This document shows, piece by piece, positions 2,612-39,014 of a stretch of 64,000 nt of DNA. The DNA is from Bugula neritina (Eukaryota; Animalia; Bryozoa), in assembly GCA_964035545.1 (NCBI GenBank), contig OZ037771.1, positions 12,895,133 to 12,959,132 of the forward strand, given 5' to 3'. A model generated the notes under the pieces. The model was not told where the DNA came from. It saw nothing but the letters and a program-made list of their open reading frames with translations, and made no database searches. The first letter of the stretch is position 1, and every line of letters begins with the position of its first letter. The position numbers were made by a program, and so were the translations under genes.

Positions 2612-2829
2612 GTGTCTCTAACCGCAAAAAGTATCAACAATAATATCGGCGTAAAGTCAGTTAGATTCTTGCCACAGTTGAAACAAGATATGACATTGTG
2701 TGTGTGTGTGTGTGTTACACTTACAGGTATCAACGTTTTATCAATAGTCAACCAACAGCTTCTTTAGTTACTAGATTGAAGAATAGAAAGTTTATTGGAT
2801 TAGAATTCAGTTTGGTAGAGTGCTACATT

Positions 2830-2870
2830 ACTAGTAGTAGTACTAGTAGTAGTAGTAGTAGTAGTAATAC

Positions 2871-2932
<62 letters not shown>

Positions 2933-3006
2933 CTAGTAGTAGTAGTAGTAGCAGTGGCAGCGGCAGCGGTAGTAGTAGTAGTAGTAGTGGTAGTAGTAGC
3001 AGCAGC

Positions 3007-3044
<38 letters not shown>

Positions 3045-3390
3045 CAGTAGTAGCAGTAGTAGTAGTAGTAGTAGCAGTAGTAGCAGTAGTAGTAGCAGTA
3101 GTAGTAGCAGTAGTAGTAGTAGCAGTAGTAGTAGCAGTAGTAGTAGTAGCAGTAGCAGTAGTACTGTAATTACATTTAGTTTTACTACTAGTACTAGGTC
3201 TAGTAGTAGTACTAACTGTCTAATGCTAGTACTATACACTTCGAATACAACTACTACTAATACTACTAGTACTAGTAGTACTACTAAAGGAACTACTGCA
3301 TCACTACCACACTCACCATTACTATAATTGCACCCACTACTATTTACTCTTACTACTGTTTTACTACTACTACTACTACTAGTACTACAC
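2830..3390. repeat. (AGT/AGC)n microsatellite followed by a degenerate (ACT)n tract
   Basis: Directly visible: AGT repeats ~2830-3165, ACT-rich ~3240-3390. Confidence 0.95.
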
Positions 3391-3537
3391 TCACCACTAC
3401 AAGTACACCCACTACCGTCACGTGTACTACACTCACAGGTATATGCATAACTTCTCTTACATAGAGCTGAAAGTATCAACTGCTATGAACTTAAACTTGA
3501 GGGGAGAAAACACTAGGATATCAAGAGCTTGAGTGTA

Positions 3538-6500
3538 ATGGAAGATACTGATGACAATGAGCATAGCTTGGGCAAGATCCTTGAAACTTCTTTAGTTCTT
3601 CCAAGTGAATCAAGTAAGTTGAACTTAAAAAGTAAGCTTGTTCCAAGCTCTCATTTCAATAGTTTTTAGTTTTTTAATCCATCAATATGTGGACAGGCAA
3701 CTCCTAAATTATAAATATTTTTTTCAGAATAGCTTGTGTTCCTCATTGCTACCATTTTTCAAATTATCATTATATCAATTTTATAGATTCAACATTTACG
3801 AAGCAACCTGCAAGTGAAACACCAAGGCAGTCTCTGGAACTTCTTGGACCTGACTTCATAAAAAGTATGTCACCCTGTTATCTTTTCCAAGATAGTATTA
3901 TGGTGGGCTCTAATGCTTGCAATTATTATTCCAGTGTTTAATTATTAAATGGTCATAATAACGCCGGCTTTTATAGAAGAAATGATAATCATATATTTAA
4001 GTAATTATACAAGGAAAAAGGGTTGCATTTCGCTACCCTGAACTAAAAACAACATAAGTCACATTGTACACATCTAGATTCTAGTACAGCTAAACTCTAA
4101 CTTGATAGTCCCGAAGCTCTCTGCTTCACAGGGGGGCAATCACGTGATACAACGTGATTGGATACTTTCCATAGTCTGTCACGCCTTGAGATACCACTAC
4201 AAAGTGTAATCTGTGCTGCAACTGCACCTACACTATCCATTACACCGACTACTAGATTGTGTTGAGAAATCAACTCCTTTGCTCTGTTGTTCTTGTAGTT
4301 GTTAATACAACTTGCTCTTAAATTTAGAGATGGTGGTTTTGCTTAGTTTAAGTTTCTAATCTTCAGTTTTACATTTATAGAATGAAAGTTTAATATTTTT
4401 AGTTTAAAATTAGACAAACTGTTGACTAGAATTAGTGCTAAATCTGTAACTTTGCTTCTTCCTTATAATGTGTCCCACCCAGCGAATTGTTTTATTTTTA
4501 CAATCATCATTTCAGTGTATACAAGTGTGTAATATAGCACTGTGCTAGGGAACTGGAAATTCCATCTAGGGAATTTCATAAGGCTGGAATTTCCGACTGC
4601 GGTGCTATCAAATGACTCACCAAAATGAAAGTTACTTACTTACCAGATACAGCCTAGTAAAAGGCATTGTTAAAGTCAAGATATGGCTGGATATTTGAGA
4701 AACTGAAAATAACAAGTTTATTTAAACCACTTTTATGCAATAAGCTGTCAAAAGTTACTATATATGCTGAATAGTATGAGAATGGAAAATTCCCATCAAT
4801 TAGAAATTAATAGACTGCTGGAATTTCCATGTAATCAGCTACAAAGCCTGCTGCAAAGTGAATTTTGAGACTCTGCATGTGATTATTTGTTCAGCTGATT
4901 ATTTCTGCTAATATGTCTCACCTCCTTTACTTTAATTTCTAGCAAAGTAATTCTGCCCTTAACTCTACAACATGACTTTACTATTAGTATGATGTGATAT
5001 TAAGAGTTATTTGAGTGGACATGTCAAGGATTGTCAAACATAAACTAAGTGGATTTATGCTCTCATTTTACAATCTATTGCAGCTCACTGAGCAAATGTT
5101 CAACGTAAAAATATATGCTTAAAATATAAATTTCGTGATATTATGAAAACTAAAGAATTGATGAACTGTATTAAAGACTTATTATATAATAGTAGGTGTT
5201 CCTAGTAGGCTAATTTATTGCAGGCAATGGGGAGCCAGTATATCAAGACTATTCGGCCCCTACAGGAAGTTATGGCAAGCAGGCAGAACCTAATTCTGAA
5301 GTCAATGAGTCCTTTGCAGAACCTAGATCTGGTATAGAAATCAGCAAACTGCTAGGATCAGAGGCTAAAGGTGAACTGCTTATGCAATGCAATATGCGGT
5401 GGTTAGAGATGTCACGATACTCAATGATTTAAGATACAAAAGCGAAGTGTTAGGGAGTTTCAAGTATTGTATTAGCATCAAGTGGTTAACAAACGTCAGT
5501 ATCATCACATCTCTAGCAGTGGCACAAGTCTCTTTAAACTCACGCAAGTTTACAGTCACTATCCCTGTGAGAAACCCTCATGAAAAGGGTTTTTTAAAGC
5601 AGTTTAAGAATTTATTCATATGTGGCACAGGAGCAATTATAACTGGATGCTCTTCCTAACATCACTAATGGCCTTTACTGGGTTTGAACTTATGACTTCG
5701 TGTTCACATAGCCATAGCACAAGTATTTTTAAAGTATACAAAATTCTGTTCCAAATTACTTAATAAATTTTATGAAAACTTTTCTATTCAAGAGAATATT
5801 AGATGATTTCCTGCAGTCTGAAAAAGACTCTGTTGGTTTTGTTGTAGAGCTCATTAGCAGCCAGCCACCTAGATATAGCAGGGAGGATATTGTGGCTCTC
5901 AGAGATACTCCAGCCATCTTTCAATTGTGGAATTTAAATTACAAGGAACTTATTGCATCGGAGTTCTCTCAAATCTTTGTTGGAAATGGTATTACATCTG
6001 ATTTCTTAAAACCTCTTGAAAGTAGCATTTTACGCTAAAAACTTGAAAAATTTATTGTTTCTTTGATTACAAAACTACAATGTAATAGTCACAAAAGGTG
6101 AAGGCCATTTTTCCACATAATAAAGTTAACACTGTACTTCTGCTAGGATTTACTTTTGTGTGTGCTGTAGTCACGTGATGTGTGTGCTGTGCATACTTTT
6201 GCTATAGTACAGAACTTTGCATTACTCTCTTCTAGTCATTGATTTGGCGAATGAAGAAGAAGGTGACAACTCCAACTTCTTTCTTCGTCCGTATCAAGAA
6301 GAGATAGTGAAGAGATCATTGGCCGGAGAGAATGACATCATTCTACTTCCTACCGGCACCGGAAAGACACTCGTGGCCATCAAGGTCATTATTCAGCATA
6401 TTCAGAATAGATTGAAGAACGGTGAGCTTCCACGTCCATGATTTGTGTTCATCTGCTCCTAGAAATCATTGCCATAATATTGTGCTAACTCTGTGCAAAA

Positions 6501-9500
6501 CTGCCCCTTGTATTCGGAAAGAAATGTGTCTATAGTTGTGTTCAGTATTTGTTAAGTTACAAATACAGCGTCTACCAAATATAATGTATAATATAACTTG
6601 TAATATAGTTAAAATATATACTTTAACATGATATATAATGTATAATAAAATTCAATTATATTATATAATATGATGTATGGATATAATATATATAGTATAA
6701 TATAAATATGTAACTTAATACAGGTATATGACGTACAATATAATTAAAACAAATAATATAATACTAGTGTATGGTGTATAATATAATATAATACAAATAT
6801 AAAAGTATATAATATATATAATAAAATTAATGAAATCTAAATGAAAGTGAATAAAGGAAACTCCCTTGGAGAACTTTGGCTCTGGTGATTTCAATGTAAA
6901 TATGCAAGTTATACTTTATATTAAATTATCTAGGACAAAAGGTGAAGGTCATTTTTCTCGTGCCGAGAACTGATTTAGCTACTCAACAGCTAAAACAAAT
7001 TAGAAAGTTTATTCCCTCTGAATGGAAGGGCAAGGTGAGTCATTAGATCTCAGTGAGTGAAAGGGTGAGTCATTAGATCTCAGTGAGTGGAAGGGTGAGT
7101 CATTAGATCTCAGTGAGTGGAAGGGTGAGTCATTAGATCTCAGTGAGTGGAAGGGTGAGTCATTAGATCTCAGTGAGTGGAAGGGTGAGTCATTAGATCT
7201 CAGTGAGTGGAAGGGTAAGGTGAATCATTAGCTTTGTTTTTCGTTTCTGTCTCTTAAATATCAACACACATGAATATTATTTTCACAGCAAGCACTTTCC
7301 TTCCAAATCATTTTTTATAACAATAACACTTTCTTTACTTGACATATTTATTGAAGCATTTTCTCCCTGTGCTATCCTTACCAAGGGCACATTCCCTCAG
7401 TGTCATTTCTGTAATTGCTATAAACATCTGTCAAATTTAATGTACAATGTAACCCTCTGTACATTTGGTAGTCTGATAATCAAAATCACCCTATTTGCAT
7501 TTATGTATTTTTTTTATCTTCCTCTACCTACTCATTATTTTATATAAACTATGTTAAATATCTGTCATAATTGGTAGAACTTATGATATTTGTATACCAA
7601 TGTTTTAACAGAAGCATTATTCTTTATTGTTGCTTGTTGTTTGAATCAAGTTATCAATAGCTCCATGCATGTAGTAATAAACTTCAAGTAGTTTGAGTAA
7701 TGGGTTGCAGTCATATAATGTAGTGAAATTTGTTGGAATGTGATATAGTGCAATGCAATGCAATATAGTGCAATGTAATACAATGCAATATAGTGTAATG
7801 AAGTTTATTGTACTGCATTGCAATGCAATGTAGTGTGTTGTGCAGTTTAGTACATTGTAGTGCAATGCAGTGTAATATAGTGCAATGTGGTGTAATGTAA
7901 TGCAATGTACTGAAATTTAATGCAATGTAGTGCACTGTAATGCAATGTAGTGCGTTGTAGTGCATGAAGATAACTGGAGATGAGAACATGTCGGCCCACA
8001 TGGTCAAGTTCTACATGCGAGACACGGATAATCTTGTCATAGTCGTCACTCCGGCCATAGTCAGCAATTATTTCAAGACGTCTCGGGAGGCGTCGCTGTC
8101 TGACTTCTCTCTGCTTGTCTTTGATGAGTTTCACCATGCGACTAAGAAGCATGACTACAACTGGCTCATCAAACGATATGTACAGGCTCTAAATGGTGGT
8201 GACTCAGAGCTGCTTGACAACTCTCTACCTCAGGTTAATCTTATACTCCTCTCGGAAGTTCTTATCAGAAAGTCGCAAAATATTTCGACATTTTCTACAA
8301 TACAATTTGCATGTCATTATGTTCATACATGCATGTTTTTTTTCGGCCACCAGTAATGTATTTTAATGTGAATTCAGATTTCTACATATTTTCACAGAGA
8401 AACAACATTAGTAATACAGCGCATAATATCATATTTATAGTACATAGCAAAGTTATATGTAGTCTATTGTATATAACAGTATGTTGTTTTAACATATAAT
8501 GTAATATATGTAGGATTATATAGCACAATTGTATATAGTATATTATGTATAGTATGTAGCAATATGGTATGCAGTATATCATTGTATAGCAATACCAGAT
8601 ATAATATACTAATGAATAATATATAGTATACTAATGTATAGTAATATAATATATAGTATACTAATGTATAGTAATATATTACATTGTACAGTATATAGTA
8701 TATACTAATGTATAGTAATATAATATATAGTATATACTAATGCATAGTAATATAATATATAGTATACTAATGTTTTTCAACAGATGATGGGAATGACTGC
8801 CACCATTGGGATAGGATGTAGTAAAAGCCTTGATTCTGCCAGAGAGTTCATCCTCAGTCAGTGTGCAAAGTTTAACTTGAGAGCAGCCCCTTCTCAAGTC
8901 ACAAATCTGGATGGTTTCCTTAATCTTCCAGCCGAAGGTACAGAAATCTTATATCTGGTAATAGTAGCGTATAATGTTATTAGGATATAAACTATATAAC
9001 TCACCCAAGTTTATAGTCACTATCCCTGTGAGAAACCCTCTGATGGAAAGGGTTTTTTGTTAAATTCGGCTAAGGACTTATTCATATGTGATACAGGAGC
9101 AATTATGACTGAATGCTCTTCCTATAACATCACCAATGGCCTTTGTCGGGGTTCGAACCCATGACTTTGTGTTTACTAGGCAAACGCTCTAACCCCTAGA
9201 CCACGGTTACTCCCTAAGATATATATTATATAGGCTATATATAATAGTTGTGTGTTGTAGAATTCATTGTTGTGGACAAAAGGCTAGACAGTGTTTCCCA
9301 GTTCATACAGCATAATCTCATGTCGGCCATTGAAGCTCGAATCCTTAGTAAAAGTAAGCAGCTTGTATTTTATATTGGTCGGGAGTAACGGCTGCACATT
9401 TCTTACTGTTTTTTTATTTGCTGTAATTTGCCAGTAGATCTTTGCTGATTGCTTTTTCTACACTTTTTGCTGAATTGTTCAACATTCATTGGTTAGTTTC

Positions 9501-12500
9501 ATAATTCAAGTTGTTAGTCTACTGAAAAATTTTATTTAATGAAAAAACCAATCAAGTTTTAATTTAGTCGAATTTAGAATACAACCTTATATTATAGTAT
9601 AGTCTAGTATAGTATAACATAGTATAGTATAGTATATAGTGTAGTATATAGTGTATAGCATATTATGGTATAGTCTAGTGTGGTACAGTCTATAGTATAG
9701 TATAGCATATAGTATACAGTATAGTGCGTTATAGTATAGTAGGCCTATAGTTAAAAACTATTCAAAGTGTGTGCCTGTAAGAAAATATTAACCTAAATAT
9801 TGTTAGAGTAACCCCTTTCCAAGCATGTCAGCAATTTAAAAATGATTCTGTATAGGTACATGTCATGTTTCAAATAGCATGCCATGTGCTAACGTATTCT
9901 TACTTTACCTTGTATTCCTACACTACCTTGTATTTCTACACTACTTCGTATTCTTTTGCTACTTTTTATTTTTAGTTTACTTTATTTTCCTTTTCCACAC
10001 TGTATTTCTACACTAATTAGTATTACTACGCTACATTGTATTCCTAAGCTACTTTGTATTACTACGCTATATATTCTTCAGTTGAAAACAATGAAAGGTT
10101 AAGATCCTCTCTGTTGGGTGACGATAAACCACTAGAGTTTCCAGAGACTCGTACCGATCAGGTCTACCTTCAGATGGTCGTCGCTACCCAAACTGCACTG
10201 ATTAAGATTTCTCACATCCCAGACATCCAATTGGATACTCAGTATTGTAAAGTAGCCTTAGAACATCTCAAGGTACGTGAAATATGATCGAGAGGGGTCT
10301 TTGTTTAGGTATATTATTCGTTGTGCAGGCATTTCCTGCTATAAGTAAGTTGTGTATATTCATAGCTGTAGTTAAATCCCTGGTATATAATTTTACAAGT
10401 ATTTCATTTATCAATTACATATGTTGGTTACCATAGCTACTTTAACATGGCACAGTGACATTTAAAAAGTCTAAAAGCCTAAATTGTTTATTGTTTATAC
10501 AAATATACCTTGATTTGTTTTTGTTAAAATTTAGCAAAAGTTCACTGAAGATTTGAAGAGAGATCCTTGTCAATAGTGGTATACAGATGGCTTGCTTATT
10601 GCAAGCAAACTTTCAAATACTTGACTTTTTAATTTACTTAGTGTATACTGTAACTTTGTTGATAGTTTGATAACTTGAAAATATTTTAAGATGTAAACTT
10701 TTCTGGCTCTCCATTGGGTCCAGCGTCTTTTCTAAGGGATAAAGCATCTCATTTGTAGTAGCAGTGATAGTTTGATGGGCATTGGACCTGATTGTGTTTG
10801 TTTACTTTGTTTGTTATCCAGATGTATACTATTAACTAGTGGTGTATAGTATTCTGTATATTTACAAAGGTACTGCTGCTAGTGGTGTATATAATATTCT
10901 GTATATTTACAGGGGTACTGTTGCTAGTGGTGGATATAATATTTTGTATATTTATAGGGGTACTGCTGCTAGTGGTGGATATAATATTTTGTATATTTAC
11001 AGGGGTACTACTGGTGTTTGTATCTCAATAATCTTCTCACCTGCAAGTATGCTGTGAAGTATTTATTGCAATGGAAACATGAACCACACCTGAAAGGTGT
11101 GCGAGAAATCTGGGATATGTTTGAAGGTACGTATACTACTGCTGCTCCTACTGCTACTAAAATAATACTATATTTAGCTATAATTTGCTTCGATAACCTC
11201 GTGTTTTTGTGAGCTTTAAAAGAGTAAATAGTCCTTATCTTAATATTTTTTCAATTTAGAATTTTGCAATACATTATTAAAATAATATAAATAATAAATA
11301 GTGAATGGCAATATAGAACATGTGTAAAATGTTAAAGTATCAGTACACAATGATATGAAACTTTGTTTAGGAAATCTGGAAGCTATAATTCAGTTGCAAG
11401 AGTTTGAAGACCAACGGAATAGTAATGTCAAGGTCGAACGTTTAAAAAAGAGGCTGGAACAGCAACTCAGCCATCAAGAAGATTCTAAAGTAATAATATT
11501 TGTGCAGATGCGAATTGTAGCCGAATATTTGGCTACACTCCTTAACTCACTAAGTTCAAAGTTCAAGGCCAACAAGTTCATCTCCACTGGCCGATCAAAC
11601 TGGGATACATGTAAGACCTCTTGCCAACAAAATATGCTTTTGTTTTGTTAACATGTATGTCATAATAATGCTTTAGTTAGTGATCATTTTGGTTGTCTTT
11701 CAAACTTTGTTTTCAATCAAATTGTTATTGGCCTTTATTGTATTGCATGACAATGCACATCATTGATTTCAATGGTGTAGCCTCAGCACCTATGTGACAA
11801 CATAGAACATGTGTAAAATGTTAAAGTATCTGTAAATAATAATATGGAACTTAGTTTAAGAAATCCGGAAGCTATGTGACAAAACTTAGTTACTTCCGTT
11901 TTCAACCTGCCTTTGCTACATGACCCATACAAGCAGATAGGATCCCAGTCTATCTTTTGGTATAGCAACATGGCTATTTGTAGCTATGAACGCACAGCAA
12001 AGAATTGACATACGGGCAAAGTTTGAAGGTGACAGGTACAACATTCTGGTGGCTACTTCAGTTCTAGAAGAGGGTATAGATATCCAGGCTTGCAACATGG
12101 TGGTTAGATACATGTATGTTAAAGACATGATTGCCAAGATACAGAGTAGAGGTTAGTTTAACAGTGGCTAGTCTTAAGACTCTCTCAGGTTTATCAAACT
12201 CAATTATTACAGAACTCTGGCAGGGAGAGAACGCTTTGTCTAAGTATAGGGTGTAGTTTGTGGTGCTGTGGAAGTGAAAGTTTTTAGGTCATTCTTCTGT
12301 AGCGGTTTTAGCCAAATATGTGAGTGCAGAGGACCCCAAAATCCCAGCCTATAGTTTATTAACATAAAGCATGTGTATAGAGTTATTTTATCATCTATAA
12401 GTAACAGACTACTAGTCTGAGAAAGCATCATGTTAGGGCAATCAACACTATTTAGTGGATGCTCTATTATGTAAATTATTTTTCTTCACAATTTCAAATC

Positions 12501-15027
12501 ACTATTCGTTTATAATAATCAATGAGTATCATGATATCTAATGACGTTGAAGTACTGAATTACTGAAGACTGCTGATAGATATCAGTTGATTGCCTGCTT
12601 TTTTATATTCACACACACATGCACACACGTACATACAATATACTACTTCTAATCTAACATCTCACACAATAAAGTATTTTCGTTGCGACAGGCAGAGCTC
12701 GGAAAGTTGGCGCAACTCTACTCACAATTCTAGATGACAAGTTGAAGGAACAGGAGAGGACAAATGACGTCAAGGAGAAATTTATGTATGATGCCTTACA
12801 AGAAGTCAGAGGTTGGTTCTGCTGTTCTAGCTACTCTTATGAAGTCATAAATTATAATGGAATGTTAAAAGTATGCAGTACTGTCGACTGATTATACGGA
12901 ATGTGATTGCTAGAGCTGTGATGGTGCTGAACTGATAATGGTTGAAGATGGCTTGGTTACCAGTAGAATTTCAATAGATTATAACTGTCGCTTTATAATC
13001 ATTCCAGCAGTAATAATGTATTAATTTAATTAAATGTAATTATATATAATTTTACTGTATATTATATTACTAAATTTTTAATTGATAAATTAATAATTAT
13101 TTGATTGTTAATTATTATTAAATAATTATAGTAAATTTATGATTTAATTAAATAAAATATTAGTCTATACATTGAGGTAAAAAGTTCCACTAGGTGGTGG
13201 ATATTTTCGCTGCTTCATACAAAACTGATTTCCTATTTATCACATGATGCAGTATTGTTTCAGCAAAAACTTTCTTTCTGTATTTCCTGAGAGTCCGATG
13301 TGATTTGTAGATATGAGTCCGGAAGTGTTTTCACAGGAAATATACAAATACCGTTTGTTGATGAAGACGTCGAATGATGAGGATGAGTCATGGTCAACTC
13401 CGGAAGATCCCGGGGAAGCAGTTCGCGTCTGCTGCCCACTGTGTAACGCTTTCCTTGGCCTTCTCACCCATGTGCGAGTTTTCATGGAGAGTCATCACCC
13501 TGTACTTGATGCTTCTATTTCTTACCGGGTGCTGGTTCACCGTAAACCTCCAAAGACCATGTATGATGGTTAGTGTTGTTGGCATACTACTATTTCTATA
13601 TTTATTTGTGTAACTTTTACATAGTGTTCAGTGTGTAAGAAAAAAAATGAACAGGAACTTTTAGCAGCCATGCAAGCTAACCTCTATGAACTACATACTG
13701 CATACCTAGTAGATATAAACAACTCACTCAAGCAGGTTTATAGTCGCTACCCCTGTGAGAACCCCTGATTGAAAGGGCTTTTGTACAGTGGGCTAAAGAT
13801 TTATTTAGCGTGTAGCTGGTTATTTATAGCAACGGTATGATCTGCTGTAGGTATAACAAGTGTCGGGTTCTTACTGTGTTCTAATCGTAGTCAGTCAGAA
13901 AATAAGAACCCGTGTGGAGCGAGAGTCGGTGTGCTGACACAGCTGACGAAAGGTAAACTTGTCTCAATGTTTGTGATTCACAGCCATTGTGTAGCTGTTA
14001 GTTTATTTTAACCATTTTCTGTTTGTATCAATTCGTTCTACGTTGGTTGACATAAAAATGATACTATTATTTTTTATTTCTACCGCTAGTACAGTAGTGT
14101 ATTACCAATGATTACCTTCAAATTTCACGATGCAGCATGGTACTCAGATGCTCATGCCAATGTATGCATGAGTAGATGAAAAGTTACTTGCAGTAGTGAG
14201 TGTAGTCATGTTACTAGTCATGTGACTAGTGTGTATAGTCATGTTACTAGTCATGTGACTAATGAGTGTAGTCATGTTACTAGTCATGTGACTAGTGAGT
14301 GTAGTCATGTTACTAGTCATGTGACTAGTGAGTGTAGTCATGTTACTAGTCATGTGACTAGTGAGTGTAGTCATGTTACTAGTCATGTGACTAATGAGTG
14401 TAGTCATGTTACTAGTCATGTGACTAGTGAGTGTAGTCATGTTACTAGTCATGTGACTAGTGAGTGTAGTCATGTTACTAGTCATGTGACTAGTGAGTGT
14501 AGTCATGTTACTAGTCATGTGACTAATGAGTGTAGTCATGTTACTAGTCATGTGACTAGTGAGTGTAGTCATGTTACTAGTCATGTGACTAGTGAGTGTA
14601 GTCATGTTACTAGTCATGTGACTAGTGAGTGTACTCATGTGATCAGTAAACATTCTCTTTAAATGTATGGACATTGTGTAAATTTCTATATCTGAGTATT
14701 TTTCTAATCGGTTTTTGTAAACAATATATTGCTAACAAATGTAATGGAAGTATTTTATGCAAGTTTTTCTATTTTTAGGCTATCCAATGTATATTGTGTA
14801 AAGCTTCGTGCAGCTTAAATTTAATAGATTTTGGTCCCTCAGTTGTGTGCTCTATTTCAGAGTACAAGTTCGCCATGTGGAGTATTCGTGGTATCGTTGT
14901 GAGCAGTGATTCTCTCACCATGCAGCCTTCCAACTATAAGGGTATCAAGGAACAGTATATAATTAAACCATTATATATCGAAGATATTGATGAAGCTGGG
15001 CAACAATTCCAGTTTAGGGAACACTAA
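3538..15027 (+). CDS. RIG-I-like receptor (RIG-I/MDA5/LGP2 family) DExD/H RNA helicase with C-terminal Zn-binding regulatory domain, ~887 aa, no recognisable CARD
   Basis: Phase-consistent exons: 3538-3613, 3787-3864, 5224-5370, 5803-5988, 6236-6421, 6934-7034, 7961-8233, 8784-8937, 9261-9353, 10082-10272, 11003-11126, 11371-11610, 11984-12151, 12692-12811, 13311-13568, 13851-13952, 14861-15027 (2664 nt). Motifs: Q LRPYQEE, I LPTGTGKT, Ia FLVPR..L..QQ, II DEFHH, III MTAT, IV IIFVQMR, V ATSVLEEGIDI, VI QSRGRAR. CTD: VCCPLCNAFL...SHH...LLCS...PCG. The first four exons are less certain than the helicase and CTD exons. Confidence 0.93.
4548..4829 (+). promoter_or_regulatory. Intronic cluster of NF-kB-like, AP-1 and ISRE-like sites (putative immune-inducible enhancer or alternative promoter)
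   Basis: GGAAATTCCA 4555-4564, GGGAATTTCA 4569-4578, TGGAATTTCC 4585-4594, TGACTCA 4613-4619, GAAACTGAAA 4699-4708, GGAAAATTCCC 4784-4794, TGGAATTTCC 4819-4828. Confidence 0.6.
5538..5712 (-). mobile_element. tRNA-derived SINE, partial copy
   Basis: Aligns by eye to the 8998-9214 copy (cactatccctgtgagaaaccct...ggagcaattat...gctcttcct...aatggccttt). Confidence 0.8.
7035..7230 (+). repeat. 30-bp tandem repeat (6 copies plus a degenerate unit) beginning at the RLR exon 6 splice donor
   Basis: Unit gtgagtcattagatctcagtgagtggaagg at 7035, 7065, 7095, 7125, 7155 and 7185. Confidence 0.95.
7715..7960. repeat. Degenerate pentanucleotide repeat (tgcaa/tgtag/tgtaa)
   Basis: Visible 5-bp periodicity; the last unit supplies the AG acceptor of the exon starting at 7961. 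Confidence 0.85.
8998..9214 (-). mobile_element. tRNA-derived SINE, near full length
   Basis: The reverse complement starts gggagtaaccgTGGTCTAGGGGttagagcg...catgGGTTCGAACCCcg (Pol III A- and B-box-like). Related copies occur at 5538, 13721, ~23750-23920 and 37928. Confidence 0.85.
10835..11013 (+). repeat. ~45-bp tandem repeat (4 copies) spanning the acceptor of RLR exon 11
   Basis: Unit ctagtggtggatataatattttgtatatttacaggggtactgctg; the last copy contains the acceptor used in the model (exon starts at 11003). Confidence 0.9.
13721..13806 (-). mobile_element. SINE 3' fragment
   Basis: gtttatagtcgctacccctgtgagaacccctgattgaaaggg matches the SINE family above. Confidence 0.7.
14194..14645. repeat. 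33-bp minisatellite, ~13 copies, in the last RLR intron
   Basis: Unit gagtgtagtcatgttactagtcatgtgactagt, containing the near-palindrome actagtcatgtgactagt. Confidence 0.95.
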
Positions 15028-18929: not shown

Positions 18930-19995
18930 TTACAAAAGATGCTGCCACCAGCATGAGAACATAATGCAAAGTGAATTGGCAACTCCAGAGTTAGGCATAG
19001 GTTCTGTTATTATGATGTCATTTCCTTCATTACACAGGTCATCAGAGCACACACATATTGTATCACTAAATCCCAGGTAATTTTTTATCACTGCACAACC
19101 TTCAGAGTAACCTCTGGTACAGGCTCTATAAGTAACACAAGAAAGTGGACAATTCCCACAGAAAGGGAGACGGCACTTAATGCACAACAATGTGACTAGT
19201 GAATATAGTACTGAGTAGAAAACAACTCCAACTGCTATAAGAACTTACTAATTAATCATGAAATAAAGAAATTATTACCTTCGAATTGAAGATATGTCTT
19301 GTACATCATCGCCATGAAACATTGTAAATATCGTTTCACACTTTTGCGTTGTATCTGTATCGCATTCCGTATCAAAACTTGACAGTGAGCCATTGTTATA
19401 GCACTCTGACTCCAAATTGCCTGAGCAGGCTTTACATTTCAGGCCATTCACTTCTGTGCATATAATTTAACTATTAGAGCATTTATAACAGAAAAATTCA
19501 TATCTACATAATGCGTGTATAAAGACCATCATTAGTAATATTTTTAATTATCCAGGCATTGGCTCACACAATGCATTCAGCTGTAAATAACTATAAAAAA
19601 AATTTCAATTCAAAGAAGCACATGATATATAGGTAATAGAGCAGTATACATTATGTTGAGCAGTTGCCCTATAATGAACAGTTATTGTTAGCAGTGTTAG
19701 AGGTCTTGTTTGAGAACAATTTACACTTAAAAAATTTGGAATTTATGATAACTAGAAGTTAAGTTACAAACTAGGGCCTTCAAAACACAGACTTGCAAAA
19801 AGTTATGTGATTTTTCTACAAGCATACCTGCATGTTTGGATGTTTTGTGTATTTGCACCCTTTTTTTATTATCACTCAACTCAATTTTTAAACTGAGTAA
19901 ACAACATGGCACCACCTACCTGTTGACAGCTGACTTAGAGAAACAAGAAGAATGGCCATTGCAGAAGGAAAGATGAACTCCCAAGATGTTTTCAT
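18930..19995 (-). CDS. Ly6/uPAR three-finger (quiver/sleepless-like) protein, copy A; C-terminal tail frameshifted relative to copy B
   Basis: Exons 19920-19995, 19279-19453, 18930-19125. Signal peptide MKTSWEFIFPSAMAILLVSLSQLST, then LKCKAC...ECY...ECD...KCE...RACT...GCA...ICVCSDDLCN (10 Cys, ending in CN). Confidence 0.85.
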
Positions 19996-23110: not shown

Positions 23111-24257
23111 TTACATGTGTGTCACAGTGCTTATACATGCTGCCACCACCATAAGAAGATTAGGCAGAGGGAAGGCAACTCCAGAGTCAGGCATAGGTTC
23201 TGTTATAACGATGCCATTTCCTTCATTACACAGGTCATCAGAGCACACACATATCGTATCACTAAATCCCAGGTAGCTTTTTATCACTGCACAACCTTCA
23301 GAGTAACCTCTGGTACAGGCTCTATAAGTAACACAAGAAAGTGGACAATTCCCACAGAAGTGGAGACGGCACTTCATGCACAACAATGTGACTAGTGAAT
23401 ATAGTACTGAGTAGAAAACAACTCCCACTGCTATAAGGATTTACTAATTGATCATGAAATATAGAAATTATTACCTTCGAATTGAAGATATGTCTTGTAC
23501 ATCATCGCCATGAAACATTGTAAATATTGTTTCACACTTTTGCTTTGTATCTGTATCGCATTCAACATCAAACTTTGATAGTGAGCCATTCTTATAGCAC
23601 TCTGACTCCAAATTTCCTGAGCAGACTTTACATATCAAGCCATTCACTTCTGCGCACATAAATTAACCATTAGTGCAGTTAACAAATAAGATGTCGAGTG
23701 TATAACAACAAACATTAGCCTACACAAACATTCATATTTTGCTTGAAGTTTCCATCCCTACAGGTAAGGGTTTTTCTAAGAACTTGTTATTTGTAGCAAG
23801 AGAGAAAATCTATGATAGAATGCTCTTGATAATAATATCATGATCAATAAATAAAGTTTACCGAATTTAAGCCAATGACCTTGCGTTTACTAGACCAGAC
23901 TCTAGCCATTATGTCATGGCTGCTCTCTAAGTTGTTAGAATGATTTTATAAACAGCTACATGTTGGGGGTGAATGAGTGCAGTAGTTAGGGTTCTCGAGT
24001 TTAGAGTCGGAAGCTCCACTAAGCCCCACAAAGCCCCCAACTCTAGATTCGAGAACCCTAACTATTGCACTCATTCACTCCCAACTCAGAGCTGCTTATA
24101 GAACCATTTAAATTGTTAAGCCTCATAAAAAATTTAGAGCAGGCTTCTAAAATATTGAGTGAATAAATTGGCATCATTTACCTGTTGACAGCTGAATTAT
24201 GGCAGCGACAAGAAAGACAACTCCAAATGGGAAAATAAATCCTCTTGAAGTTTTCAT
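23111..24257 (-). CDS. Ly6/uPAR three-finger (quiver/sleepless-like) GPI-anchored protein, copy B
   Basis: Exons 24182-24257, 23475-23649, 23111-23321. MKTSRGFIFPFGVVFLVAAIIQLSTEVNGLICKVC...ICVCSDDLCN...DSGVAFPLPNLLMVVAACISTVTHM: signal peptide, 10-Cys LU domain, hydrophobic GPI-like tail. Confidence 0.9.
23939..24108. mobile_element. Palindromic MITE in intron 1 of LU copy B
   Basis: gttgggggtgaatgagtgcagtagttagggttctcga ... tcgagaaccctaactattgcactcattcactcccaac; same family as 25596-25739. Confidence 0.8.
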
Positions 24258-37380: not shown

Positions 37381-39014
37381 ATGGAGTCAATCTGGCCCAA
37401 GTCACCAGTCTTTACTCTGGTTGTTTTCTATTATATTACTATATCTCAAGTCTCTGGTAATTATCAATAAGTATATAATATGATCAATAGCCAGATTTAC
37501 AATTCTTCTATCTGCTATATATAACATTTTTTTGATAAATGCTGACTCACTAATGGCTGCATTTGTAAAATATATAGCTATAAAACTAGCACTAAGTTTG
37601 CACAAATAATGAAACATTTGTGTGTGGCTAAACAGCAGCCCATATAAATCTAATCAGCATTGTTTGGCATTGATGAGTTCCTGAGTGTCATGCACCAAAA
37701 ATCTTTATGCTAAGATGGCCTCGTAAAAGTTTTTCTAAGCAAAAACATGGAAAAACTATAGATTAGGTTAAACCAAGTCTAGTACAAAAGGCTACATAGC
37801 TGGTTTATATAAAATTAATTTAGAGTTTATATTATCTAACTAATTAGCATAAAATATTTATGACAGGCTTATCTTACATAAGATTAAACCCTAATTATTA
37901 ATTATTACTGTATAACTATACATGCAAGGGAGCAGCCTAGTAAGCACGAAGTCATGGGTTCGAGCTCTGACAAAGGCCATTGGTGATGTTAGGAAGAGCA
38001 TCCAGTCATAATTGCTCCTGTTCTCCATCGGAATAAGTCCTTAGCCCAATTTAACAAAAACCCCTTCCATCAGGGGTTTTCTCACAGGGATGGTGACTAT
38101 AAACTTGCGCGAGTTACTGTATAACTACATTCCCGGTATATTTGCTCGATTATTCTTCATGACATAACTTTGATAAAATGTGTTGTAGATGTAAATGGTC
38201 TGACATGCAAAGTTTGCCAAGGTTTTCAGACCTCGGAATGCTACCACAATTCTTCCTCATCAGACTTTGATCGTGTTTGTAATGCAAACCATAATAAAAG
38301 TGTTTGTATACGAAGATATGTCTCATTTGAACGTGATCCAACTGCTGATTCTATTTTAAGGTGCTAATATTTACTTCAATTATATGTTCGTTGCTTTTCC
38401 TTTATATATAAAACTAGTAAAATATGAATGAACACACCTAAATAATCAAGGTTCTTCTTAATTTTGCTTGATTTCCCATGTTTTTTCTAATTATTCAGCT
38501 ACTTTTGATTTCGGAGAGCTATGGTTTTTTCATAACACCCTGCAATCAAAAGTAGCTGAATAATTAGGAAAAAACATGGGAAATCAAGCAAAATTAAGAA
38601 AAACCTTGATTATTTAGGTGTGTTCATTCATATTTTACTAGTTGTGGGCACAACCCATGTTCTTTAACAACTAAATTGTAAAAACGTAGCTAAAAACTGA
38701 AGATTTTCAGTGTGTACTAAATTAAGTAAAATGACTCCTTATTCATTTATAATAAATTTGTCAGTTTTATCACATCCTTTGAGTTTTCTTATAGAGAATG
38801 CGGAGAAAAATTTGACGATGGATGTGCAATATTGAGAAATATTCTTGGATTCAAAGAAATAACGTGTGTTTGCTCCAAAGAGCTGTGTAATAATGGAAAT
38901 GCAATAATTTTGAAAAGTAGATATGTTAATAGCAGTGAAGTACTTTTGTCTAGTAAGATCATGTTGCTTTTATTGACTGCTGCAACAACTGTTTTTGTTG
39001 TGGTCAATGTTTAA
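37381..39014 (+). CDS. Ly6/uPAR three-finger (quiver/sleepless-like) GPI-anchored protein, copy C
   Basis: Exons 37381-37456, 38189-38360, 38795-39014. MESIWPKSPVFTLVVFYYITISQVSDVNGLTCKVC...ECY...VC...VC...REC...GC...TCVCSKELCN...SSKIMLLLLTAATTVFVVVNV. Same intron phases (1, 2) as copies A and B. Confidence 0.9.
37928..38115 (+). mobile_element. tRNA-derived SINE in intron 1 of LU copy C
   Basis: B box GGTTCGAGCTC and body matching the 8998-9214 copy; flanking direct repeat ttactgtataacta at 37905-37918 and 38114-38127 (TSD-like). Confidence 0.85.
38412..38643. repeat. Near-perfect long inverted repeat (MITE-like) in intron 2 of LU copy C
   Basis: aactagtaaaatatgaatgaacacacctaaataatcaagg...cagctacttttgatt and its reverse complement; arms of ~95 bp. 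Confidence 0.9.

Follow-up and report, generated by a model that had tools for sequence, protein, structure and literature searches.

A constrained N-terminal exon of a bryozoan RIG-I-like helicase gene and its likeness to eIF4E-binding motifs

The helicase gene

Here we describe a gene of the bryozoan Bugula neritina encoding a RIG-I-like receptor (RLR) helicase, together with a short exon joined ahead of it, hereafter the motif exon. The window, i.e., the whole stretch of DNA that was analysed, comprises 64,000 nucleotides, and positions refer to it unless a contig is named. Exon 2 (6236-6421, + strand) encodes an acidic linker (ANEEEGDNSN), the stretch LRPYQEE and helicase motif I (LPTGTGKT), and is matched by the Pfam DEAD/ResIII models. 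Downstream of it lie helicase exon 3 (6934-7035, +), an open reading frame piece with motif II (DEFHH; 7964-8176, +) and a Hel2 (Helicase_C) exon piece (11986-12156, +; Pfam E=4.7e-11), whose best PDB matches are MDA5 (2.3e-10), RIG-I, LGP2 and Dicer. A last piece, containing CCPLC (13313-13573, +), weakly resembles the RIG-I C-terminal domain (CTD): its Pfam RIG-I_C-RD match (E=0.082) falls below the cut-off, and the PDB matches of this single-exon query are weak (E=0.23-0.39), yet colinear with the duck RIG-I CTD. With motif I (GxGKT) and motif II (DExH) in Hel1 and a Hel2 closest to the RLR/Dicer type, the gene can be placed among the RLRs.

The substitutions that separate exon 2 from its relatives are distributed over the three codon positions as 0/1/8 and 0/1/11. 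Its open frame contains no in-frame ATG upstream of LRPYQ, so that a 5′ coding exon is needed. No match to the CARD_2, CARD and Death HMMs, which do match elsewhere in the same genome, was obtained on contig C7 near 12.87-12.91 Mb at E<=10, and a CARD or Death exon is absent from about 40 kb around the 5′ end of the gene. An inverted paralogue located 14 kb away (C7:12874983-12880638) matches the gene from exon 2 onward only and lacks the motif exon.

A coding exon ahead of the helicase

A sequence-only reading of this DNA had proposed an exon at 5803-5988 encoding an eIF4E-binding-like peptide. The peptide is indeed present, the frame of 5805 encoding ...LISSQPPRYSREDIVALRDTPAIFQLW... within the translation of 5805-5990 (DFLQSEKDSVGFVVELISSQPPRYSREDIVALRDTPAIFQLWNLNYKELIASEFSQIFVGNG). 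The proposed 3′ end was also right: a donor (AAT G|gtatta) lies at 5988|5989, and intron 1 (GT...AG; 5989-6235, +), in which relatives differ by large indels and diverge by 16-20%, ends at the acceptor ttctag|TC (6235|6236). A GTC codon is thereby rebuilt across 5988/6236 and reads on into VIDLANEEE...LRPYQEE...LPTGTGKT, joining the motif exon in frame to the exon of helicase motif I.

The proposed 5′ start, in turn, has to be moved. A start at 5848 rather than at 5803, and hence a span of 5848-5988 (+), is most likely for the exon, its inferred content being 2 bases that complete a split codon, LISSQPPRYSREDIVALRDTPAIFQLWNLNYKELIASEFSQIFVGN and 1 further base, because an indel and neutral divergence are found upstream, over 5733-5847, and because an acceptor with a polypyrimidine tract (ttgttgtAG|AG, 5846-5847) is conserved in relatives and is used, with the same donor, by the AUGUSTUS model P0004 of a sister assembly. 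The open frame at 5733-5847 (+), which includes an ATG at 5772 as well as the start at 5803, behaves as non-coding: its 14.2% divergence, with substitutions of 3/7/6 by codon position, is intron-like, and the sibling-species sequences L002 and L015 both carry a 2-bp deletion at 5829-5830 that sets the upstream ATGs in different frames. Although this region evolves neutrally, the ATG at 5772 in the window, or the ATG equivalent to 5803 in the relatives, may still act as species-specific starts.

The motif exon was compared with L002, L015 and a contig of DNA run X1, whose reads confirm the sequence and give a fourth haplotype; the relatives, which are sibling species or strains, are separated by only 2-16%. 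Divergence in the exon is 4.2% and 8.0%, vs 14-20% in its flanks, i.e., 2-3.5 times lower, and the changes are mostly synonymous or conservative. The one confirmed indel, an 18-bp deletion in L015, is in frame and removes the ISSQPP codons (5853-5870, +), a flexible Ser/Gln/Pro linker directly before Arg-Tyr, giving VVEL-RYSRED. Conserved splice sites flank the exon, and every sequence compared reads into exon 2 exactly in phase.

Counting from the Tyr as position 0, the core YSREDIV (5874-5894, +) is identical in L002 and L015, and Tyr, Arg+2, Ile+5, Val+6, Arg/Lys+9, Thr+11 and Pro+12 are kept in both and in the X1 contig. The Tyr codon is TAT in the window (5874-5876) and, synonymously, TAC in L002 and L015; that of Arg+2 is AGG in the window and, again synonymously, CGG in X1. 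Ile+5 (ATT, 5889-5891) is Ile in all sequences and Val+6 is encoded by GTG (5892-5894). The contig of X1 has Ala for Glu at +3 (5884), and L002 has Lys at +9. In this comparison, which is at sibling level only, the entire exon is as conserved as the motif positions. Judged from these sequences, the motif exon is coding and selectively constrained, and its predicted use in the gene rests on frame continuity, constraint and the gene model of the sister assembly.

Several candidates for coding exons farther upstream were rejected. The first upstream exon of P0004 (MLLQSEL...) is interrupted by a stop codon in the window, and the second (NGEPVY...) is put out of phase by an 8-bp indel and diverges by 10.9%, which is the neutral rate; the same model contains a 17-nt micro-exon that compensates a +1 insertion. 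Among ATG-to-donor exons screened for conservation in L015, none was convincing, and the junction of a candidate exon at 5143-5198 would create a TAG.

An orphan module with a predicted helix-turn-helix

Database searches were run exon by exon. An exhaustive HMMER search among 1.84 billion representative proteins (1.84e9) found no relatives of the motif exon outside the Bugula neritina complex, returning nothing but P0001, P0004 and a repeat protein, P0005 (E=5e-4), which is spurious, its OSBP-like model containing LWNLLYKNIGKDLSQIS in six artefactual repeats. A word search matched nothing but a sibling-species fragment of 67 aa, metagenome scans for deeper orthologues gave Bugula-complex sequences only, and no second copy exists in the animal's own genome. 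Neither Pfam, nor PDB sequences, nor the Atlas contain a match to the exon, and Foldseek retrieved no structural relatives.

The AlphaFold2 (AF2) model of the exon, built from a three-sequence alignment only and with a mean pLDDT of 74, starts with a coil, which is followed by an 8-residue helix and, past a turn, by a helix of 18 residues. The coil covers the ISSQPP linker before the Tyr, which is also where the indel is tolerated; the first helix runs from +2 to +9 and breaks at D-T(-P), and is followed by amphipathic helices (AIFQLWNLNYKELIASEFSQIFVGN; 5913-5987, +), 13-37 residues past the Tyr, modelled as H21-38 and H40-43 with a pLDDT of about 78. The fold of residues 80-229 of P0004 (pLDDT 44) is uninformative.

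Resemblance to eIF4E-binding regions

The resemblance to eIF4E binders pointed out by the sequence-only reading, with Ile at the Leu position and Val at phi, not only holds but is closer than it had been described. The extended string Y-S-R-E-D-I-V-A-L-R-D-T-P (5874-5912, +; Y0, R+2, I+5, V+6, R+9, T+11, P+12) adds to the core an Arg at +2, an Arg/Lys at +9 and, at +11/+12, a Thr-Pro, a context that the animal's own 4E-BP (G000:C5:10836795-10838337; RIVYERKFLLQCRNSP) also shows. With respect to YX4L-phi (ELM LIG_eIF4E_1), the Tyr at 0 and a hydrophobic residue (Val) at +6 are present, and the Leu at +5 is replaced by Ile. The string agrees with the extended consensus YX(R/K)X2L-phi-X2(R/K/Q) (PMC5538437) at four of the five specified positions (Y0, R+2, phi+6 and R+9); the basic residues at +2 and +9 are important in the competition with eIF4G (PMC4573856). 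The Thr-Pro stands at the place where 4E-BP, Thor and Mextli carry a Ser-Pro in the elbow loop (PMC4573856), its counterparts being S65-P66 in Thor and S592-P593 in Mextli. CUP, Mextli and p20 are known to carry helical non-canonical motifs at a distance of 12-30 residues downstream.

The Leu at +5, together with phi, makes the most conserved contacts in eIF4E binders. The sole documented alternative that we found is the Met of GIGYF1/2, and no validated eIF4E-binding motif with Ile at +5 was found. The documented cases consulted have Leu or Met at +6, not Val, and the Ile+5 and Val+6 of the bryozoan string are both beta-branched.

YxxxxL-phi is too frequent for informative use (PMC3763552). 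About 1.5 matches to Y....[LMI][hydrophobic] are expected per 950-aa protein, and the same RLR contains two further ones (YAVKYLL and YKYRLLM). With Ile allowed, chance alone predicts about 270 occurrences of the extended pattern in a proteome of 10^7 residues, a number that falls to about 1.5 once [ST]P at +11/+12 is added. The core motif alone is thus no more than chance and the extended context is uncommon, a rarity that has to be read in the light of the post hoc choice of the site in a whole-genome scan. Among peptides with refined motifs, of which six could be produced, only Angel1 was reported to be retained on an eIF4E column (PMC3763552).

Comparison with known systems

One parallel is with 4E-BP/Thor, which shares the Tyr at 0, Arg+2, hydrophobic residues at +5/+6, Arg+9 and [ND]-[ST]-Pro at +10 to +12 (RNSP in the animal's own 4E-BP), a helix over +2 to +9 and hydrophobic sequence farther downstream. 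Unlike it, the bryozoan RLR has Ile for the defining Leu and Val for Leu/Met, carries the string on a large helicase instead of a small disordered protein, lacks similarity to Pfam eIF_4EBP, and continues into a long amphipathic helix, not into a non-canonical motif of the IPGVT type. Weighed against coincidence, the Arg+2, the Arg/Lys+9, the Thr-Pro, the helix predicted exactly over +2 to +9, the disordered linker and the hydrophobic helix predicted 13-30 residues downstream would all mirror bipartite 4E-BPs.

The 4EHP-binding region of GIGYF1/2, in which YXYX4L-phi is combined with non-canonical and auxiliary motifs, is likewise N-terminal, tolerates a residue other than Leu (Met) at +5 and has its hydrophobic non-canonical motif about 12 residues farther on; however, the bryozoan string has Pro at -2 (P-R-Y) instead of Tyr, GIGYF has an aromatic residue at +9 instead of Arg, and neither a GYF domain nor auxiliary motifs are recognisable in the bryozoan gene. 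As to novelty, we found no paper on an RLR with an eIF4E motif, in agreement with the sequence-only reading; the docking of a helicase on eIF4E is nevertheless not unprecedented, as DDX3X is reported to contact eIF4E through YxPPx-phi-R (PMC3510515, PMC8558276). DDX3X/Ded1 resemble the bryozoan protein in being RNA helicases whose N-terminal region contains a Tyr-based peptide, which in their case is reported to compete for eIF4E at its dorsal surface (PMC3510515, PMC8558276), but Y-S-R-E-D-I-V has neither the Pro-Pro at +2/+3 nor the Arg at +6, and they belong to the DEAD-box family whereas the bryozoan protein is of the RLR/DExH type.

Among the RLRs, the CARD-less vertebrate LGP2 (DHX58) is a protein of helicase and CTD that, like the bryozoan gene with its candidate CTD, has no detectable CARD, but it begins at the helicase, whereas the bryozoan gene has at least 46 extra residues and an acidic linker before LRPYQ. 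Lophotrochozoan RLRs are documented to owe their diversity chiefly to the grafting of domains at the N-terminus and to exonization (PMC8998645). The case described here shares with them a helicase core with a candidate CTD, a lineage-specific exon at the N-terminus by which sibling paralogues differ, and the pattern of exonization/pseudoexonization. The difference is in the graft, a 46-residue orphan predicted as a helix-turn-helix, not a recognised domain such as DED, Death, IG, SAM or CASc. Bryozoans are absent from the main text of that survey (PMC8998645).

Origin and possible roles of the exon

We hold, with moderate confidence, that this is a constrained, lineage-specific N-terminal exon of a bryozoan RIG-I-like helicase gene whose likeness to an eIF4E motif is most likely coincidental. 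The module would have arisen by exonization or domain grafting, as in lophotrochozoan RLRs, and, with its short Ser/Gln/Pro linker and the predicted helix-turn-helix after it, would occupy the position taken in other RLRs by CARDs or different grafted domains. It would probably be the receptor's own small protein-contact or regulatory tail, its first amphipathic helix probably using Ile, Val and Leu to pack on the second helix or on a partner. That the resemblance is probably coincidental is suggested by the Ile in place of Leu, the high chance expectation and the low base rate of refined motifs that bind. Distinctly unlikely, in our judgement, is that the exon constitutes a genuine bipartite, phospho-regulatable eIF4E/4EHP-binding region replacing the signalling domain of a CARD-less RLR. 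In such a region, REDIVALR, preceded directly by the Tyr, would dock as a helix on the dorsal surface of the cap-binding protein, D-T-P would serve as a phosphorylatable elbow, and the amphipathic helix after it would extend to the lateral surface. Once bound to dsRNA, the helicase would either compete with eIF4G or bring in 4EHP, silencing translation locally as opposed to signalling through CARD-MAVS. The fit to the extended consensus, the T-P and a compatible AF2 secondary structure argue for such a dock, as do the Met of GIGYF1/2, by which the “Leu” position is not absolutely invariant, the precedents of CUP, Mextli and p20 for the downstream helix, the retention of every consensus position across four haplotypes, in which the Tyr and R+2 codons vary synonymously and +9 shows an R>K exchange, the lack of a detected CARD and the precedent of DDX3X as an eIF4E-binding helicase. 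Against it weigh the beta-branched pair with Ile for Leu, relatives too close to reveal motif-specific conservation, the number of extended matches expected per proteome together with the post hoc choice of the site, the scarcity of binders among refined motifs, and the fact that no paper found links an RLR to an eIF4E-binding motif. If the motif were to work, dsRNA sensing would be directly linked to repression of the cap-dependent translation of the RNA that is bound, in a sensor-effector fusion undescribed for any RLR; an antiviral RNA sensor would be wired directly to the cap-binding machinery, providing a signalling-free effector route and a new RLR output.

The helix could also be a docking or regulatory element for some other partner, unrelated to cap-binding proteins, either a kinase-regulated adaptor contact (R-x-S, T-P) or an autoinhibitory helix folding onto the helicase or the C-terminal domain. 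We consider this rather unlikely, given that no homologue, domain or structural match indicates any partner, though the amphipathic helix-turn-helix, modelled with moderate confidence, the constraint extending over the whole exon and not over the motif alone, and the wide variation of N-terminal effector modules among lophotrochozoan RLRs are all consistent with it. This alternative overlaps the reading as a lineage-specific tail and differs from it only in naming a specific class of partner. That the exon lies outside the mature mRNA, as a pseudo-exon or gene-prediction artefact, the protein then beginning in exon 2, farther downstream or from other 5′ exons, appears very unlikely. The paralogue does without the exon, and the sole gene model that includes it, P0004, is AUGUSTUS-derived and flawed elsewhere, as illustrated by its broken upstream exon and its micro-exon; nevertheless, the lowered divergence, the in-frame 18-bp indel, the conserved splice sites, the exact phase into exon 2 and the requirement of exon 2 for coding sequence 5′ to it all speak against an artefact. 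Read as a lineage-specific N-terminal exon, the locus provides a bryozoan case of the rapid N-terminal remodelling known for lophotrochozoan RLRs.

Rel-like sites upstream of the exon

The orphan 46-residue exon, borne by one of two inverted paralogues, is found near a dense cluster of NF-kB-like sites. Five matches to the NF-kB/Rel-like motif GGRAWTTYC lie at 4555-4828 (no strand assigned), about 1 kb upstream, and the window as a whole contains 15 strand matches vs 2.06 expected, a number that none of 100 shuffles reached. The block at 4482-4660 is 95-97% identical to L015, and the 4555-4828 cluster is a candidate immune-responsive promoter or enhancer.

Boundaries of the motif exon

The sequence-only reading had described an exon at 5803-5988 carrying an eIF4E-binding-like motif, and this observation is real once the exon bounds are corrected. 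In the frame of 5805 the plus strand of the window (G000:C7:12895133-12959132, AT-rich at about 32% G+C and intron/exon-structured) encodes the peptide ...VGFVVELISSQPPRYSREDIVALRDTPAIFQLWNLNYKELIASEFSQIFVGN, whose translation places the tyrosine (Y0) at 5874-5876, the core YSREDIV at 5874-5894 and the last base of Pro+12 at 5912. The 3′ end also stands: the exon closes at G5988, directly followed by GTATTA, and exon 2 opens at T6236, preceded by ttctAG. Since this splice rebuilds a Val codon (G+TC) and the frame runs on into IDLANEEEGDNSNFFLRPYQEEIVKRSLAGENDIILLPTGTGKT, the motif string lies about 50 residues N-terminal to helicase motif I.

The start at 5803 does not hold. The boundary evidence consists of a three-way alignment and substitution counts by codon position, and three extra versions of the locus were available: a 1.8 kb JGI metagenome contig (L002), 12.7 kb of the draft assembly GCA_010799875.2, bearing AUGUSTUS models (L015), and a contig assembled from DNA run X1, which spans 5820-6362. 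Both L002 and L015 have a 2-bp deletion at 5829-5830, and the region 5733-5847 shows 14.2% divergence, its substitutions being distributed 3/7/6 among the codon positions; it is thus read as non-coding. A conserved acceptor, a pyrimidine tract with AG at 5846-5847, is also used by P0004, a gene model of the draft. From 5850 to 5987 divergence is 4.2% (L015) and 8.0% (L002), that of intron 1 being 16-20%. L015 lacks exactly 18 bp (ISSQPP), the frame being kept, and has one additional A close to the exon end, which its gene model offsets with a 17-nt micro-exon; the window counterpart (6081-6097) has CAA, not CAG, as acceptor. As PacBio data were used in the draft assembly (PMC7576161), the extra A is probably a long-read homopolymer error followed by gene-finder rescue. 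The same AUGUSTUS annotation divides the helicase gene into two, P0004 (L015:356-2763) and a following 620-aa model.

GCA_010799875.2 is a Bugula neritina draft genome (PMC7576161), whose contig VXIV02002838.1 encodes the exon-bearing protein. At this locus its neutral DNA is about 16% apart from that of the animal's own assembly (216,009,554 bases; the Darwin Tree of Life assembly of B. neritina has 9 chromosomes and 216.00 Mb, PMC11480708), a difference that would be compatible with cryptic sibling species.

An orphan segment on a RIG-I-like receptor

All searches and folding were done on separate exons. Downstream pieces match Pfam DEAD, ResIII and Helicase_C, the Hel2 piece has MDA5, RIG-I, LGP2 and Dicer helicases as best PDB matches, and a later CCPLC piece bears a weak, colinear likeness to the RIG-I C-terminal domain, with E=0.08 in Pfam and 0.2-0.4 in the PDB; judged by these matches, the gene is a RIG-I-like receptor (RLR). 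Exon 2 substitutions fall 0/1/8 and 0/1/11 by codon position in two relatives, and the gene is therefore considered to be under purifying selection.

The motif segment, as far as the sequence searches reach, is not a known one. It occurs once in its own genome, a word search returned a single 67-aa fragment, and Pfam, PDB sequences, the ESM Atlas and Foldseek gave no match. An exhaustive search of 1.84 billion representatives recovered only the proteins P0001 and P0004, besides a spurious repeat protein that was discarded. Furthermore, an inverted paralogue on the minus strand (C7:12874983-12880638; L008, L011-L013), up to 88-93% identical in amino acids in the Hel2 exon and separated from the left end of the window by 14.5 kb, has exon 2 onward in common (motif I to CTD), whereas the motif exon is absent and its N-terminal region is different, being Ser/Asp-rich. 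Its orthologue in a relative (L006) likewise has exon 2 onward without the motif exon.

Likeness to eIF4E-binding motifs and its meaning

The extended canonical motif is YX(R/K)X2L-phi-X2(R/K/Q) (PMC5538437). Arg/Lys at +2 and +9 makes it a stronger competitor of eIF4G, and an elbow loop, often with a Ser-Pro phosphosite, comes after the canonical helix (PMC4573856). Hydrophobic non-canonical motifs, helical in some cases, lie 12-30 residues downstream (PMC5538437, PMC4573856). The RLR string Y-S-R-E-D-I-V-A-L-R-D-T-P shares Y0, R+2, R+9 and P+12 with the animal's own 4E-BP (RIVYERKFLLQCRNSP...LPTIPGVT) and differs conservatively at +5, +6, +10 and +11. From a three-sequence alignment, AF2 predicted (mean pLDDT 74) coil to Tyr-Ser, a helix R-E-D-I-V-A-L-R, a break at D-T and then an 18-residue amphipathic helix.

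These identities speak for a true dock on eIF4E or 4EHP, as does the retention of the specified positions in four closely related haplotypes, with synonymous changes at Tyr (TAT/TAC) and Arg+2 (AGG/CGG) and R to K at +9. Such a dock nevertheless appears improbable. With relatives this close and an exon this uniformly conserved along its whole length, conservation is uninformative on the motif itself. Moreover, position +5 is Ile in place of the canonical Leu, whose contacts, together with those of phi, are the most conserved (PMC5538437, PMC4573856), and the sole documented alternative found is the Met of GIGYF1/2 (PMC5538437). Chance expectation is high. About 1.5 core matches are expected per protein, and this RLR has two more of them in its folded parts. 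For the extended pattern, about 270 matches per proteome are expected when Ile is permitted and about 1.5 when [ST]P is required as well; because the site was chosen from a genome-wide read, even this rarest figure is not significant. The core motif has been considered too common to search for, and among six producible conserved refined-motif peptides only Angel1 was reported as retained on an eIF4E column (PMC3763552). Helicase docking on eIF4E has a reported precedent in DDX3X (PMC3510515, PMC8558276); in the literature, no paper connects RLRs to an eIF4E-binding motif.

That the helix serves to dock a different partner is unlikely, and that the segment is not expressed very improbable. We rather favor, with some confidence, an N-terminal helical module that would have been grafted onto the RLR, its likeness to eIF4E motifs being coincidental. 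The N-terminal diversity of lophotrochozoan RLRs is described as stemming mainly from "domain grafting" and "exonization", and the bryozoan orphan exon is consistent with these processes (PMC8998645).

The upstream region and other features of the window

Upstream of the motif exon, a search for conserved ATG-to-donor exons yielded nothing convincing. The two upstream exons of P0004 were rejected, one for a stop codon at the window equivalent and the other for an 8-bp indel that puts it out of phase and for neutral-rate divergence. CARD_2, CARD and Death HMMs gave no match on C7 near the locus, the same models matching elsewhere in the genome. The only above-cut-off CARD_2 (RIG-I/MDA5-type CARD) match in the genome lies on another contig (G000:C2:9945614-9945877, minus); as it adjoins none of the four helicase matches found with exon 2, it may be part of a MAVS-like adaptor or another RLR.

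About 1 kb 5′ of the motif exon, between the two head-to-head RLR paralogues, five NF-kB/Rel-like sites (GGRAWTTYC) form a tight cluster at 4555-4828 (4555, 4569, 4586, 4785, 4820), within a block 95-97% identical to the sister species. Over 64 kb the motif has 15 strand matches where 2.06 would be expected, the observed number being reached by 0/100 shuffles. This conserved cluster, a candidate immune-inducible promoter or enhancer, suggests that the promoter would be near and the N-terminus short. A further site lies outside it, at 2582.

A tRNA-derived SINE with a GGTTCGAACCC-like T-arm lies at 5536-5710, with copies at 8995-9206 and 37935-38113; its copy number is very high, contig depth in DNA run X1 reaching about 10^6. 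A long trinucleotide repeat (AGC/TCT-type) at 2698-3479 leaves poly-Ser, poly-Leu and poly-Val/Ala frames open on both strands. Within an RLR intron, a 45-bp tandem repeat has about 4 copies (10836-11013) and >20 in the sister assembly (L015:8782-10094). A long tandem repeat at 14144-14674, probably an intronic minisatellite, lies between the last RLR exons and leaves both strands open (HMTSNMTTLTS... / SHVTSHVTSEC...). Finally, a small cysteine-rich ORF of two exons (CRLPFCGNCPLSC...DDLCNEGN), present in two tandem copies on the minus strand (18930-19451 and 23111-23659), looks like a three-finger / Ly6-uPAR-type secreted protein.
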